DNA from: Rhodosorus marinus CCMP1338 | Taxonomy: Eukaryota > Plantae > Rhodophyta | Assembly: GCA_029953675.1 (NCBI GenBank) | Contig: JAMWBK010000007.1 | Span: 1,674,001 to 1,738,000 of the forward strand | DNA: 64,000 nt | Reading direction: 5' to 3' | Part shown: piece after piece, positions 1,470 to 32,314 of the stretch | Layout: each line of letters begins with the position of its first letter | How positions within the stretch are numbered: the stretch's first letter is position 1 | Made by a program: the position numbers and the translations under genes | The notes under the pieces: generated by a model | What the model saw: the letters and a program-made list of their open reading frames with translations, nothing else | Told to the model about the DNA's origin: nothing | The model's database searches: none

Positions 1470-3641
1470 TTGACCACGGGGTTTTTTCGGGTGGATGCGA
1501 AGGGTGCGGGGATGGGGACCTTCAACTTTGATGGAGGGATCATTGAGCTTGGCCAGGGCTTTGATTCGTTCAGTGGCAAGGTACGAGGAAGGGCGGCAAG
1601 GACGTCCGAGGGGGGGTTTGTGAGATTTGATCAGACGAAGCTCGATGAGAGTTTGGACGGGCTAATGGGATCGAGGCACCATCCGTACAAGACGGTGGAC
1701 TACGAGGCCAAGATTGTGGACTCCTCCAGTGAGTCTAGTGACTTTCTTAACATCTACGGGGAAGCGGAGTTCAACACTGGAGGACTTGGAGGCAAATTAT
1801 CGGGTGCATACACCGAGACGGAGAAGAAAGCTGGCGATAAGCTTCGGGTTGTTGTTAAAGTTACCGCGACGCAGTCAGTCTATTTCGTAAACCCATTGGA
1901 GATAAGCGTGCCCGACATCCTGAAACCAAGCGACGATTCGAAGGAGGATCAGTTGAGGTTCAGGAGGATGTATGGGAGACACTTTGTACACGCGGTGATC
2001 ATTGGGGGAGAGCTGACTGGCATGGTTGATATCAAGACCAACTTTGGCGAGACGACGGAAGATATAGAGGGCTACGCTGAAGTATCTGGCATCTACAGTG
2101 GAATCAAGCTCACTGGAGGGGTTGGGTTTTCTCTGTTCATGAAGAGGATGACGGAGAATCGAAAGATTGACATCACCATGACGGCGGTGGGAGGAAGCAT
2201 TACACGGGTGCCAGTTTCCGCTTCCGATCTGGTCGAAATCGCAACGGAGTTTCCCGGGCAAGTCTTTGGGACATTTGAGAAGGGGAAGTTGGGGAGCGCT
2301 GTTCCCATTCGAATGATCACGCGGCCTTATGCCCATATTCCAGGATTCAAGAAGATCACCACTGAGCTTGGGGAGCTGGCCAAGTTCCTCACCGACGATG
2401 TGCGGGATATGTTTTTGCAGGCGGATGACGTGGTTAAGAAATTGTCCATCGTGGTTGCGGAGTATTTTCTCTATCACATGAATGAAGCTGACGTACGTCA
2501 GCTCGCGAAGAGCCTCGAGGAGCTGAGGGACATGCAGTTCTACCTGCTCCGATTGTTCACGGAGCTAAACGGTGGGCTCCCGGTCGAGGAAGAAGACGAC
2601 GACCTGACGCCAGTTCAATCTGCGGACTTCATTTTGAGAAAGTTTACTGAGCTCAAACAGCTGCATCCCCGCCCAATCAGCTCGTTCTTGACGGAGATGC
2701 TGGAAACCATCGCTCGAGCCAAGCGACGGTTTGCGTTCACCACGAATTTGGGGGATCCGCGCCGCGAGAAGGAGGTGATCACTTTTCCGAACGGAGTTAA
2801 GATGGTGTCTGGACACCCGGTGCGTTTGGGTGACCAATCTGGCCGTCATCTTGCTCTAAGCCCCGCGCTCATGCTGGATCCTTACAATGGAGCAGAAATC
2901 GTAGGTGAGGGCCTGCGCGAGCAGGCAGAGGAGTTGCTGAGGCAGCAGCAAGGGGACGAAGGAGACGGTGAAGCCAACTCCTCAGATGAGGAGCAAAGGT
3001 TCGGCAGCGAGACAGCCGATATCGACAATGTTGAGGAGGTCCAGATCACTGATATTGAAAGAACTCTCGCCTGGTCCTCCCTGGAAGAGCAAGTCATACG
3101 GCATAGTCCAGATAGCGATGACTTTGGAAGCAGATCAACTCTTGCAAGGGGTCTGTGCATGGGCCATTCGAACGACCTCGTGCTCGTGCATGTCGCAGAT
3201 CATACCGACAACATCGTGTTCTTGGAGATCGTATCGTCTCAAGGGGAGAGGCGTGGTCTTGTGAGGACGGTCTGGCCGTACAGAGGTAGTGGCTTGCTGA
3301 TTGTAGACCCTTTCGGAGACTACACGGAGGTCAAGGCGTTGGCGGACTGGAGCTATTTATTTTATATGCACATAGACGTAGAGAGAGAAGGCGAGCCGCT
3401 GTCATCGTCCTCGCAAAATCACAGCCACTATTGTCTGGGGAGGTTCACTACAGCCGACACCGACCATGAGGTCATCGTCACTAACCACGAATCTTCTGCG
3501 CGCTATTTGCAACCTCTTACGATGCCTAAACTCGTCGCGGATTCACCACGGTCCCGTGATGCGCGGACTCTGCAACAAAATCATGCTCTGGATCTTGTTC
3601 TGGAGCTGATGGCTGTTGAGGAGCTTGTCGCAGAAGCCTAG
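1470..3641 (+). CDS. MACPF-like pore-forming protein, paralogue 1 (likely ATG start at 1512; ~709 aa): MACPF domain, helical region, acidic linker, C-terminal WPYRG module
   Basis: LGQGFD near the N-terminus; YGRHFVHAVIIGG matches the MACPF signature (Y/W)G(T/S)H(F/Y)x6GG; two Gly/small-residue amphipathic TMH-like segments; downstream AVPIRMITRPY is shared with the paralogues. No signal peptide visible. Confidence 0.85.
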   Translation: MTTGFFRVDAKGAGMGTFNFDGGIIELGQGFDSFSGKVRGRAARTSEGGFVRFDQTKLDESLDGLMGSRHHPYKTVDYEAKIVDSSSESSDFLNIYGEAEFNTGGLGGKLSGAYTETEKKAGDKLRVVVKVTATQSVYFVNPLEISVPDILKPSDDSKEDQLRFRRMYGRHFVHAVIIGGELTGMVDIKTNFGETTEDIEGYAEVSGIYSGIKLTGGVGFSLFMKRMTENRKIDITMTAVGGSITRVPVSASDLVEIATEFPGQVFGTFEKGKLGSAVPIRMITRPYAHIPGFKKITTELGELAKFLTDDVRDMFLQADDVVKKLSIVVAEYFLYHMNEADVRQLAKSLEELRDMQFYLLRLFTELNGGLPVEEEDDDLTPVQSADFILRKFTELKQLHPRPISSFLTEMLETIARAKRRFAFTTNLGDPRREKEVITFPNGVKMVSGHPVRLGDQSGRHLALSPALMLDPYNGAEIVGEGLREQAEELLRQQQGDEGDGEANSSDEEQRFGSETADIDNVEEVQITDIERTLAWSSLEEQVIRHSPDSDDFGSRSTLARGLCMGHSNDLVLVHVADHTDNIVFLEIVSSQGERRGLVRTVWPYRGSGLLIVDPFGDYTEVKALADWSYLFYMHIDVEREGEPLSSSSQNHSHYCLGRFTTADTDHEVIVTNHESSARYLQPLTMPKLVADSPRSRDARTLQQNHALDLVLELMAVEELVAEA

Positions 3642-30064: not shown

Positions 30065-32314
30065 TCAAGCAGAGTTGCCATTGCTAGGTACCGACCAAGA
30101 GAACTCTGCTGACCAGTCCGACTCAGTCTCACCACCTGCGGGCCGTGTACAAAGCAACGGACTGAACGCCGGGTCGTTCTCTACCGCGCCAAACATGAAC
30201 AACTCCCAGGCTGGTTTGGTTTCCATCTGATGCGCGTAAATCTTTATCTTTCCGGGTCCTTCATCAATGAATTTGAAGATGTAGCTCTTATCGTCAAAAT
30301 TTTGTTCCAAGGGTGCCAAAGTGATTATCCCGTGCTCCATAAACTGCAGTGTGTGTCTCCAGTACTGACCGTCGGTGGACTGTACCCTTGCCAAATGCTG
30401 CGCCCCGTCGACGATATGAATTCTGAAGTACATGGTGGCCTTGGGCAATCCGAGCGTTGAGGATTGAAATGCCTGAACTGTAGGCCCAGCTCGTACTGCG
30501 TATAAGGATTTCTCAGAGGCAGTGAATTTCTCGTCTTTCATCGATTCCATGAGGAACGCAGCAGTGTCTTTCTTCGCCGCGTCCTGCAGATCGATGCCTT
30601 CTCTAACAAACCTTTCGACATCGACTTCATCTTGATCAAGCAATTCTTCGATTCTTGCTGGAACCCGTCGCTCCAAGACCCTGTGCGTGCCGGAGTCCAT
30701 CTTGCGCTGCAGTTCTTCCCTCAGTTCATCCTCGGAATTCACAGTTTTCAGGAATAGAAGATCGTCCGTCTCCTCCGCAGTTCGATCGAAGATAATTAAA
30801 CTCTTTGAAACAACCCCTTGCAGGACATATGCTTCATCGTCCGCTCCATATGAGAACGACATATATGCTCCACCTGAGATTCGTGTTGTCGTCTCATCAA
30901 CTGATACTAGCGGGAAAGTGTTGTCCAGGAACTTTTGAAATCGAAGCCGCTCGACATTCCGCAGCTCACTTTTTCGCTTGACTTGCTCCCTTTCTCGGAG
31001 TTTCTGGCTTGCCTTCGCACCCTGCGCCTTCTTATACAGGCTTCTCGCCTGAAGATTGTGAACCTGGGGCGGGACCTGAGGATATATCTCCAGTTTTCTT
31101 AAAGCGTCAACAGCTATCTCAGCAGCTTTCTCATCCGCTTCAGCTTCTGCAGCCTTAACTGTTGCCAGAAGTTTTACTTGCATCATCCGCAACGCATCCC
31201 TCTTCTCGCTCAGGTCTCTCAGTTGAGGTAACTGGAGAACGGAGTCTCGATCTTCCATTATATCGGATATTTGTTTCTTCACCTCCTCACAGGACAAGTA
31301 CTTTTCGACCACATCGTCGAGGACGTAGCTGGACAGCCTTGCAAGTTCAGATTCAGTCTTCGAAAAGTCGGGAATTCCCTTGTACTTTGTCACGACCGCC
31401 CTCAGGGGAACCGCCGTTCCGACAAACTTGACAGCATCAACAGTCACCTCTGGGGCCTCTTCTTCCCCCTCGGCTCGATCCCCTTCACCCAGCTGTGTGT
31501 CCTCCAGTTTCTTCCGCTCACCAAGTCCAAATACTTGGGTCGCTCCTGCGCTGCTTACTCCAATTCGCAGGAACGCATCTCCTCCGAACACCATCGCTGG
31601 AAACATTCGAAAGAGCTTCACGAAACTCACCGGGTCCATCGGCACAAGCTGAACACCTCCTCCCTGTATCGAAACCGTTACATTGGCACTTCGACCACTC
31701 GTCATGTTGGAAACCAGCGTATCGATACCAATCTTCCCAGATGCGACACCTTCCTTGCCTGCAGCCGCATCAGCTTTGATGTTCTGCCGGGACTCGTTGG
31801 AATTTGCCTTAATTTCTATCACACCTTCTAACCGCCCTCCTATCTCAAGTGCTGATATGTACGTGTCTCCGAACATTTCCAAGAACGTATCCTGCTTCAG
31901 ACTCAAGTTGTCCAACGGGTTCTTGTTCTTGTCAACAACCGGTTGACCCTTTATTCGGGCCACAGAGTGTCGAACCATGACACTCACCAGCATGTATTCA
32001 TTGGATGAGGTGTCAAGTTTCATCTTTTCAAATTTTCCTTCAACGCTTCCTGAGAATGCGCCTTTCGTGACATTTAAAGCTCCACTGATATTCATAGAGT
32101 CCAGCAGCTCCTTCTTGCTCTCAATGAACCTGTACTTGTACTCAACGGCACTCCCTGGCGATCCGTCCTCCAACCAGTTGTTTTCGTGAAACAGCGTCGT
32201 TTCCTGATCAAGCGCCTCTTCGAAAGGGGAACCCCGGACCGCACCACTGAGAGTATCATATCCAAGTCCAAGACGACACATCGAAGGCTGGAAAGGCACG
32301 AGAAACGACGTCAT
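30065..32314 (-). CDS. MACPF-like pore-forming protein, paralogue 4 (749 aa), with helical region and divergent C-terminal module
   Basis: LGLGYD; FGDTYISALEIGG signature; AVPLRAVVTKY; C-terminal RVQSTDGQYWR..GIITL..SYIF parallels paralogues 1 and 2. ATG start. Confidence 0.82.
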   Translation of the reverse strand: MTSFLVPFQPSMCRLGLGYDTLSGAVRGSPFEEALDQETTLFHENNWLEDGSPGSAVEYKYRFIESKKELLDSMNISGALNVTKGAFSGSVEGKFEKMKLDTSSNEYMLVSVMVRHSVARIKGQPVVDKNKNPLDNLSLKQDTFLEMFGDTYISALEIGGRLEGVIEIKANSNESRQNIKADAAAGKEGVASGKIGIDTLVSNMTSGRSANVTVSIQGGGVQLVPMDPVSFVKLFRMFPAMVFGGDAFLRIGVSSAGATQVFGLGERKKLEDTQLGEGDRAEGEEEAPEVTVDAVKFVGTAVPLRAVVTKYKGIPDFSKTESELARLSSYVLDDVVEKYLSCEEVKKQISDIMEDRDSVLQLPQLRDLSEKRDALRMMQVKLLATVKAAEAEADEKAAEIAVDALRKLEIYPQVPPQVHNLQARSLYKKAQGAKASQKLREREQVKRKSELRNVERLRFQKFLDNTFPLVSVDETTTRISGGAYMSFSYGADDEAYVLQGVVSKSLIIFDRTAEETDDLLFLKTVNSEDELREELQRKMDSGTHRVLERRVPARIEELLDQDEVDVERFVREGIDLQDAAKKDTAAFLMESMKDEKFTASEKSLYAVRAGPTVQAFQSSTLGLPKATMYFRIHIVDGAQHLARVQSTDGQYWRHTLQFMEHGIITLAPLEQNFDDKSYIFKFIDEGPGKIKIYAHQMETKPAWELFMFGAVENDPAFSPLLCTRPAGGETESDWSAEFSWSVPSNGNSA

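Follow-up and report, generated by a model that had tools for sequence, protein, structure and literature searches.

A 64,000-nucleotide stretch of the nuclear genome of the red alga Rhodosorus marinus CCMP1338, hereafter called the window, carries in its first half four genes resembling those of MACPF pore-forming proteins, interleaved with two genes for giant proteins built of repeated domains. This arrangement raises the question of what a red alga does with such a set of genes, and whether they work together or simply lie together. An earlier note on this DNA, made from the sequence alone, proposed that all six encode one co-functioning pore toxin or a recognition-coupled killing or immunity module. 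The analysis presented here points, with moderate probability, to a narrower reading: five or more pore-forming defence proteins of the Aeg-L/pleurotolysin-B type, stored in the cytoplasm and encoded by an old cluster that arose through local duplication, with the two giants standing outside the demonstrated unit.

The genome of R. marinus CCMP1338 comprises 31.2 Mb, 8392 genes and 24,821 introns, and the paper that describes it makes no mention of MACPF or perforin (PMC10250338). No paper on MACPF pore-formers in red algae or in phytoplankton was found.

Gene content and intron structure of the locus

The cluster lies on contig JAMWBK010000007.1 (2.21 Mb) of assembly GCA_029953675.1, which belongs to the nuclear genome of R. 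marinus CCMP1338 and whose proteins match those of the cluster verbatim; the locus is eukaryotic, as had been proposed. Among the open reading frames (ORFs) listed for the first 32.3 kb of the window, seven are long (1470-3641, plus strand; 3966-6716, minus; 11458-17289, plus; 18444-19592, plus; 20853-26315, minus; 26349-29045, minus; 30065-32314, minus). The public annotation places exactly six genes between 1.5 and 42 kb, the same six that result from the ORF analysis, and leaves gaps without genes at 6.7-11.4 kb and 32.3-42 kb. Both sources agree with the six substantial genes, and with their order and orientation, that the earlier note had described between 1.4 and 32.3 kb. They are listed here together with the only intron of the cluster; M1 to M4 are the MACPF-like proteins, and lengths are in amino acids (aa).

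1512..3641 (ORF from 1470), plus strand: M1, 709 aa, identified from the ORF, the public annotation and paralogy
3966..6716, minus strand: M2, 916 aa, identified from the ORF and paralogy, convergent with M1
11458..17289, plus strand: giant 1 (ILEI protein), 1943 aa, no intron, identified by Pfam ILEI
18474..19592 (ORF from 18444), plus strand: M3, 372 aa, in tandem downstream of giant 1 and convergent with giant 2
20853..29045, minus strand: giant 2 (LamG protein), ~2701 aa, identified by Pfam Laminin_G_3 and a transcript
26327..26413, minus strand: intron of giant 2, 87 nt, GT..AG, phase 1, with an in-frame TAG
30065..32314, minus strand: M4, 749 aa, in tandem upstream of giant 2

The frames 20853-26315 and 26349-29045 are considered one gene because they share the same frame, are separated by the 87-nt intron and are continuous in a transcript. 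This transcript, contig L001 from another R. marinus strain, reads across the intron junction of giant 2 with the intron spliced out, so that the single intron predicted earlier is real. Giant 2 accordingly includes the 898-aa ORF 26349-29045, and its product measures ~2701 aa. The public model of giant 2 has 2647 aa, implying 249 nt of introns, where the transcript supports one 87-nt intron and ~2701 aa; the deposited model may therefore remove coding sequence.

Across the six genes, introns account for 87 nt in 22.3 kb (0.4%), against 7.2% in five annotated neighbours, and the near absence of introns from the cluster likewise contrasts with a genome mean of ~3 introns per gene. This intron poverty could be due to a recent or foreign origin, or to selection for fast expression.

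A divergent branch of the MACPF superfamily

M1-M4 are paralogues over ~350 N-terminal residues, with BLASTP E values from 1e-3 to 7e-60 and identities of 20-34%. Two word-indexed homology searches returned nearly only the proteins themselves and Rhodosorus matches. Relatives of the family were collected by an exhaustive HMMER search with an alignment of the four window proteins, which yielded 1937 at E<=1e-3 and 492 at E<=1e-10, and they were found in fungi, bacteria and the green alga Nephroselmis. Furthermore, application of the family profile to the 8.5 kb left of the window revealed a fifth paralogue, M0 (L002:5691-6884, minus strand, 397 aa, E=8.5e-7; NDN08_004678 / KAJ8903574.1), which sits 1.6-2.8 kb left of window position 1 and is more divergent than M1-M4. 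With M0 adjoining on the left, the cluster extends beyond the window, and the full array, with arrowheads giving the direction of each gene, has the order <M0 M1> <M2 ... ILEI> M3> <LamG <M4.

Comparison with solved structures places the family among known pore-formers. A profile built from 57 relatives matched, in the PDB, Alternaria Aeg-L (9uj0) at 9e-30, Mpf2Ba1 at 4e-5, stonustoxin beta at 1e-4 and Toxoplasma TgPLP1 at 3e-3, and a profile made from the four window proteins alone still matched Aeg-L at 9.6e-6 and Mpf2Ba1 at 7e-3. M3 was modelled with AlphaFold2 from a 57-sequence alignment, reaching a predicted local distance difference test score (pLDDT) of 74.1 and a predicted template modelling score of 0.64. 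Comparison of folds had been proposed in the earlier note, and with Foldseek the M3 model indeed falls among MACPF/CDC proteins, which make up all 50 of its 50 best matches in the PDB (E 2e-7 to 1e-4; probability 1.0 in 46 of them and 0.99 in the others). These matches include Plu-MACPF, C8/C9/C6, GNIP1Aa, TgPLP1, astrotactin-2, Mpf2Ba1, Aeg-L, perforin, MPEG1 and pneumolysin. Aeg-L, the top sequence match in the PDB, ranks tenth among the fold matches.

The signature motif of the superfamily is also present. Its classical form is Y/W-G-T/S-H-F/Y-x6-G-G; every paralogue has the variant [YF]-G-x-x-[YF]-x6-G-G, in which G and GG are invariant and the T/S-H of positions 3 and 4 is changed in most copies.

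1971..2009, plus strand: M1 signature, YGRHFVHAVIIGG
6186..6224, minus strand: M2 signature, FGDHFVQAVVIGG
18894..18932, plus strand: M3 signature, YGTGYVSSISYGG
31835..31873, minus strand: M4 signature, FGDTYISALEIGG
within L002:5691-6884, minus strand: M0 signature, YGDYYCCGITLGG

Between the core strands of the MACPF proteins lie candidate transmembrane hairpin regions (TMH1 and TMH2) of ~34-42 residues each. In at least one of these regions of M0, M1, M2 and M3, the beta hydrophobic moment exceeds that of shuffled sequences (fraction <=0.05), which is a sequence pattern only. Judging from profiles, predicted fold and motif, M0-M4 are very divergent MACPF-superfamily proteins of an Aeg-L/pleurotolysin-B-like branch, and the claim of four MACPF-type pore-former homologues in the window is borne out by the profile matches to solved MACPFs, the fold and the signature motif.

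Outside this common domain, the proteins differ from one another. The MACPF domain starts ~10-20 residues from the start codon, and signal peptides, hydrophobic N-termini and transmembrane segments are absent from all six window proteins. Cysteine content is 0.3-0.5% in the MACPF proteins and ~1% in the giants (range over the six proteins 0.3-1.1%). In M1, the MACPF domain (~residues 1-350) is followed by an acidic linker and then by a C-terminal domain that carries the motif VWPYRGSG. M2 has the same layout, and the two proteins share the acidic linker, a conserved middle region and the C-terminal domain, with the common motif VWPYRG(S/G)G. The linker of M2 is an acidic repeat encoded by a tandem array.

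5247..5427, minus strand: 27-nt tandem repeat of M2, encoding EAETEEPQL ~6.7 times in the acidic linker

In the M2 orthologue of the other strain, this segment is replaced by a different and shorter acidic linker (850 versus 916 aa for the whole protein), and the linker is thus length-variable. M3 consists of the MACPF domain and a helical tail only, and M4 has an acidic insertion within the MACPF domain and its own C-terminal region, unrelated to that of M1 and M2. The C-terminal parts of M1, M2 and M4 gave no match in Pfam, NCBIfam or the PDB, and M3 has no extra domain; among the retrieved proteins, the C-terminal parts are confined to Rhodosorus-like sequences. No recognisable carbohydrate-binding domain was found on the M0-M4 polypeptides in the Pfam scan.

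Age, expression and conservation of the cluster

Chance cannot account for five members of one family packed into ~35 kb when the genome measures 31 Mb, and such crowding is the usual signature of local duplication. Among 159 family domains, the distances between the paralogues are as great as those separating them from fungal, bacterial and green-algal members. The neighbour-joining tree of these domains is saturated: only M1 and M2 are resolved, as sisters, and the monophyly of the paralogues is undecidable from it. A recent tandem array is ruled out by the identity of only 20-34% between paralogues, and by this divergence the array is old and not the product of a recent tandem burst.

Transcripts of the orthologues of all six window genes are present in R. 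marinus MMETSP transcriptomes, which means that all six are expressed in ordinary culture. The orthologues are P0004 (M1, a fragment), P0005 (M2, 850 aa, MMETSP0011), P0003 (M3, 86% identity), P0006/P0161 (M4, MMETSP0011), P0160/P0163 (giant 1) and a protein of 2675 aa on L001 (giant 2, 79% identity). Between the strains, the synonymous divergence (dS) is 0.33-0.39, and the ratio of nonsynonymous to synonymous divergence (dN/dS) is 0.24 for M3 and 0.34 for both the LamG and the ILEI gene, values that indicate purifying but not strong constraint on the three genes tested.

Gene order was compared at two depths. The convergent arrangement of M3 and the LamG gene is kept in the second strain (L001). 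The 10.8-kb contig L001 (MMETSP-derived, JGI 3300017118) joins these convergent genes across a 1.2-kb intergenic region, which could be explained by overlapping 3' ends, by read-through or by genomic DNA in the library. The ILEI orthologue of the second strain is on a contig (L004) that continues into a transposon-like ORF and is uninformative for the linkage of ILEI and M3. At greater depth, the only relative with genomic context is a contig 4.3 kb long (L009, from Logan SRR26188903, GC content 56.5%), which carries two genes 1.6 kb apart.

295-1386, plus strand: M3-type gene, 30% identity, E=1e-44
3001-4284, minus strand: M1/M2-type gene with an MWPYRNGG C-terminal domain (E ~5e-11), convergent with the M3-type gene

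No giant gene lies between these two, and as far as this short contig shows, conservation reaches deeper for the linkage of MACPF subtypes than for the place of the giants. A cluster mate at 90% identity, P0010, is found on a 1.3-kb contig in the metagenome-assembled genome 'Cyanobacteria bacterium J06553_1', and that contig is probably mis-binned algal sequence. Two metagenome scans, which used the C-terminal domain of M1/M2 and the M3-type domain respectively, recovered no related locus; a scan of bacterial genomes gave one uninformative contig of 3.8 kb, and the bacterial context of P0035 was likewise uninformative.

These data also bear on a further alternative, namely that the clustering has no functional meaning and reflects an ancient tandem array that was never broken, in which two unrelated large genes came to lie or into which they were inserted, perhaps within an intron-poor island gained by horizontal transfer. 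It is common for tandem arrays to enclose unrelated genes. The intron poverty of the cluster genes would suit this explanation, as would a family whose patchy occurrence over bacteria, fungi and algae is compatible with transfer, the transposon relics and gene-free gaps in and beside the cluster, and the lack of a giant at the corresponding place in L009. However, paralogues that are mutually as distant as they are from bacterial and fungal members are still adjacent, both here and in L009, which is a hint of selection for linkage. Moreover, the cluster has a GC content of 50-53%, like the remainder of the window, and the presence of ILEI, a eukaryotic domain, shows that the block as a whole is not a single bacterial transfer. 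Linkage devoid of meaning is regarded as quite improbable, and as the least probable of the explanations weighed here.

Predicted role of the pore-formers

In the favoured reading, that of an old cluster of stored defence proteins, the MACPF proteins would be made constitutively and kept as soluble cytoplasmic monomers, and they would meet a foreign membrane once the cell is damaged or eaten, or through unconventional export. Their C-terminal domains would then bind the target membrane, the proteins would oligomerise, and TMH1 and TMH2 would unfurl and insert as a beta-barrel pore, with the divergent paralogues possibly supplying different target specificities or hetero-oligomers. The likeliest role would be defence against grazers or pathogens, on the model of the cytoplasmic pore-formers and lectins of fungi. 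The aegerolysin/MACPF toxins of fungi have no signal peptides, and neighbouring genes encode their components (PMC9505663). Aeg-S/Aeg-L, a pore-forming toxin of two components with Aeg-L as the large subunit, perforates epithelia (PMC13341504). Fungal cytoplasmic lectins, in turn, defend against predators (PMC3355094).

Several observations weigh against this reading. The Pfam MACPF family PF01823 stays below its gathering score of 21.5 bits in all four window paralogues (20.9-21.0 bits in M3, ~13.5 bits in M2 and M4, no match in M1), and it reaches E<1e-3 in only 5 of 57 close family members. The template modelling scores of the Foldseek matches of M3 are low (0.22-0.33). The hairpin regions of M4 are weakly amphipathic and not above shuffled sequences, and M0 is without the second GG motif. 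Aegerolysin (PF06355), the partner in the fungal toxins, was matched by none of the six proteins and by none of ten intergenic ORFs 72-166 aa long, and the latter matched no Pfam family at all. Pore activity is predicted and the defence role is drawn by analogy only; expression in ordinary cultures gives no sign of induction by enemies; and the lack of a signal peptide fits an intracellular role equally well.

Some of these same features suggest that the MACPF-like proteins may act within the alga's own cell and not as toxins against other organisms, in regulated death, membrane remodelling or the control of immunity, the last in the manner of plant MACPF proteins of the CAD1/NSL1 type. The weak hairpins of M4 and the missing second GG of M0 imply that some copies may be non-lytic, and the non-lytic astrotactin-2 is among the structural matches; signal peptides and transmembrane segments are missing from all the proteins, and the genes are transcribed in ordinary culture. 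On the other hand, the nearest characterised relatives (Aeg-L, Mpf2Ba1, GNIP1Aa and stonustoxin) are lytic, the hairpin regions of M0-M3 keep their beta-amphipathic alternation, and signal peptides are also missing from those relatives in fungi that are genuine toxins. Rapid divergence and numerous paralogues would, furthermore, fit a family engaged in an arms race. An intracellular role is considered unlikely, although it is the strongest of the competing explanations.

The two giant proteins and their link with the pore-formers

Both giants are real, expressed and conserved Rhodosorus-specific genes within the cluster. Giant 1 begins with a coiled-coil-like N-terminal stretch, followed by a crystallin-like segment (residues 56-131) and three ILEI/GG segments (417-503, 588-680 and 1082-1169); its C-terminal ~770 aa belong to no recognisable family. 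Its description as an ILEI/crystallin protein holds for the ILEI part, with three copies of PF15711 above threshold (E=3e-29, 101.7 bits against a cutoff of 27). The crystallin part is sub-threshold: beta/gamma-crystallin PF00030 scores 23.1 bits, under its cutoff of 25, and Clostrillin (PDB 3so0) matches residues 52-134 at E=6e-3. At the sensitivity used, no homologue of giant 1 was detected outside Rhodosorus, the sole match being the orthologue P0160/P0163 of R. marinus MMETSP0011 (77% identity), so that its co-occurrence with MACPF genes cannot be scored.

Giant 2 consists of ~880 N-terminal aa without a family, seven Laminin_G_3 domains and a degenerate tail resembling an eighth repeat. 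The seven LamG domains claimed for it are confirmed by Pfam (PF13385, E=2e-81, 271.7 bits against a cutoff of 27.6, seven copies).

Product residues 944-1091, 1179-1310, 1427-1563, 1683-1826, 1910-2046, 2118-2251 and 2348-2491: LamG_3 repeats of giant 2

A single-sequence search of the LamG region against the PDB returned nothing; the profile of the LamG_3 repeats matches ConA-like, pentraxin, LamG and arabinanase-CBM structures. For giant 2, the only orthologue known is that of Rhodosorus. The word 'lectin' is a fold label for both giants, and given that they also lack signal peptides, glycan binding by their LamG_3 and ILEI modules is an assumption.

The central proposal of the earlier note was that these giants and the MACPF paralogues form one multi-component pore toxin or recognition-coupled killing or immunity module. 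In such a module the giants would act in trans as binding or sensing scaffolds, a part played in relatives by lectin domains fused in cis. Giants of repeated beta-sandwich modules are the sole two non-family genes in the cluster, and they resemble the pore-formers in lacking signal peptides, in being nearly free of introns (compared with 7% intronic sequence in five neighbours) and in a dN/dS similar to that of M3. Giant 1 is restricted to Rhodosorus at the sensitivity used, giant 2 has its Rhodosorus counterpart as the sole known orthologue, and the M3-LamG arrangement is kept in the second strain. A binding module is, moreover, normal for such pore-formers: 90 relatives scanned contain 25 lectin-domain matches (H-lectin 10, jacalin 7, GON 5, ricin 2 and C-type 1), which makes the combination of a pore-former with a binding module typical of the family.

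These arguments are opposed by a series of negative results. Of the 90 MACPF-family relatives scanned, not one carries a fused LamG_3, ILEI or crystallin domain. BLASTP revealed no domain common to the giants and the MACPF proteins, and across seven promoters no common upstream k-mer motif was found beyond shuffled sequences. Searches with known defence-system models (PADLOC) and NCBIfam produced noise only, without a match. In L009, the M3-type gene is convergent with the M1/M2-type gene with no giant in between, synteny between two strains at a dS of ~0.35 is expected by default, and the C-terminal domains of M1, M2 and M4 could themselves perform the targeting. The traits common to both giants (great size, repeat-built structure, lack of a signal peptide, intron poverty and lineage restriction) are suggestive as evidence of a link, but post hoc.

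The giants are possible partners of the pore-formers on the grounds of adjacency and shared oddities only. A single co-functioning system of all six genes is not supported, adjacency being the only direct evidence for it, and it is not refuted either. The module is judged quite unlikely. Slightly more doubtful again is its most elaborate form, a new kind of eukaryotic pore machine with two giant cytoplasmic scaffolds, made of LamG_3 and ILEI/crystallin modules, on which several diverged MACPF subunits without signal peptides would assemble or by which they would be triggered. Its binding modules would come in trans and not as cis fusions, and the whole would serve the red alga as a recognition-coupled killing or cell-death system. 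The cluster of stored pore-forming defence proteins, with the giants left outside it, remains the preferred reading.

Flanking sequence and transposon relics

Transposon debris had been described on both flanks of the cluster. On the right flank it is present, at 36-40.5 kb; the left flank instead holds the family member M0. The relics and related repeats are as follows.

36448..40442, no strand assigned: right-flank transposon relics, comprising a reverse-transcriptase fragment and an inverted repeat
39103-39735: RVT_1 fragment
39494-39917 / 40019-40442: 425-bp inverted repeat, 97.6% identity
37510-37732: repeat, with further copies at 62216-62437 and 63573-63710
51038-51655, minus strand: transposon-like ORF, with a close copy 3' of the ILEI orthologue in the other strain (L004:6752-7078)

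The remainder of the window encodes a short-chain dehydrogenase, a zinc-finger protein, a kinase, a CHD-type helix-turn-helix protein and reverse-transcriptase relics, that is, ordinary eukaryotic sequence. A bacterial origin of the window was considered and is ruled out by the intron, the reverse-transcriptase relics, the eukaryotic neighbours and the nuclear contig.

Within the cluster, the 4.7-kb gap between M2 and the ILEI gene gave no protein-family match. It contains a perfect 81-bp tandem duplication at 8821-8981 (8821-8901 / 8901-8981). To the right, two adjoining ORFs of 466 and 225 aa at 44950-47037 (plus strand) are annotated as a single gene of 665 aa with an intron of ~90 nt, and they match no Pfam family.

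Significance and comparison with known systems

What is new at this locus is a known family of pore-formers in a new lineage, with new C-terminal domains and in a cluster of undescribed composition, the meaning of which at the level of a system is unproven. If the proteins are active, a free-living photosynthetic unicell keeps a perforin-like arsenal, and the Aeg-L/pleurotolysin-B branch, known from fungal toxins, extends to algae. The five deeply diverged, linked paralogues would then offer a natural set for studying the evolution of hetero-assembly and target choice in MACPF proteins. Should the giants prove to be true partners, the locus would represent a new way to couple recognition with pore formation; if they are not, it is an ordinary, if old, gene cluster of a toxin family.

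The closest solved relative of the M-domain is Aeg-L, and the first comparison is therefore with the bicomponent toxins of fungi (Aeg-S/Aeg-L, 9uj0; pleurotolysin A/B; ostreolysin A6/PlyB). The M proteins resemble these in lacking signal peptides and in being encoded by neighbouring genes, and the fungal pores form via the beta-hairpins of the MACPF protein. In contrast to the fungal systems, no aegerolysin gene is found in or near the cluster, which places the locus outside the bicomponent aegerolysin class, and the C-terminal domains of the M proteins are unrelated to those of the fungal toxins and without a detectable family. The fungal design of one small binder and one MACPF protein also differs from five divergent MACPF paralogues in a photosynthetic red-algal host.

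Several diverged MACPF paralogues encoded side by side are likewise a feature of complement C6/C7/C8/C9 and of stonustoxin alpha/beta, and stonustoxin beta and C8/C9 are among the sequence or fold matches of the M proteins. By analogy with these systems, hetero-oligomeric assembly of the M paralogues is a reasonable possibility. Unlike complement and stonustoxin, however, the M proteins have no signal peptide and no TSP1, LDLa, EGF or PRY-SPRY domain, and the lineages expanded independently. Further MACPF-fold proteins, from within the Archaeplastida or with intracellular or non-toxin functions, are plant CAD1/NSL1 and other non-lytic members. No specific sequence relationship of the M proteins to CAD1/NSL1 was seen, their best relatives being fungal and bacterial toxins; the non-lytic astrotactin-2 is a fold match of M3.

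Mpf2Ba1, GNIP1Aa and the fungal MACPFs fused to H-lectin, jacalin or GON domains belong to the same branch and share the layout of an N-terminal pore domain followed by a C-terminal module. They differ from M0-M4 in that the latter have no recognisable lectin domain, LamG_3 and ILEI being located on the separate, neighbouring giants. On these analogies, the locus would work most like the MACPF toxins of the Aeg-L/PlyB type and those fused to lectins.

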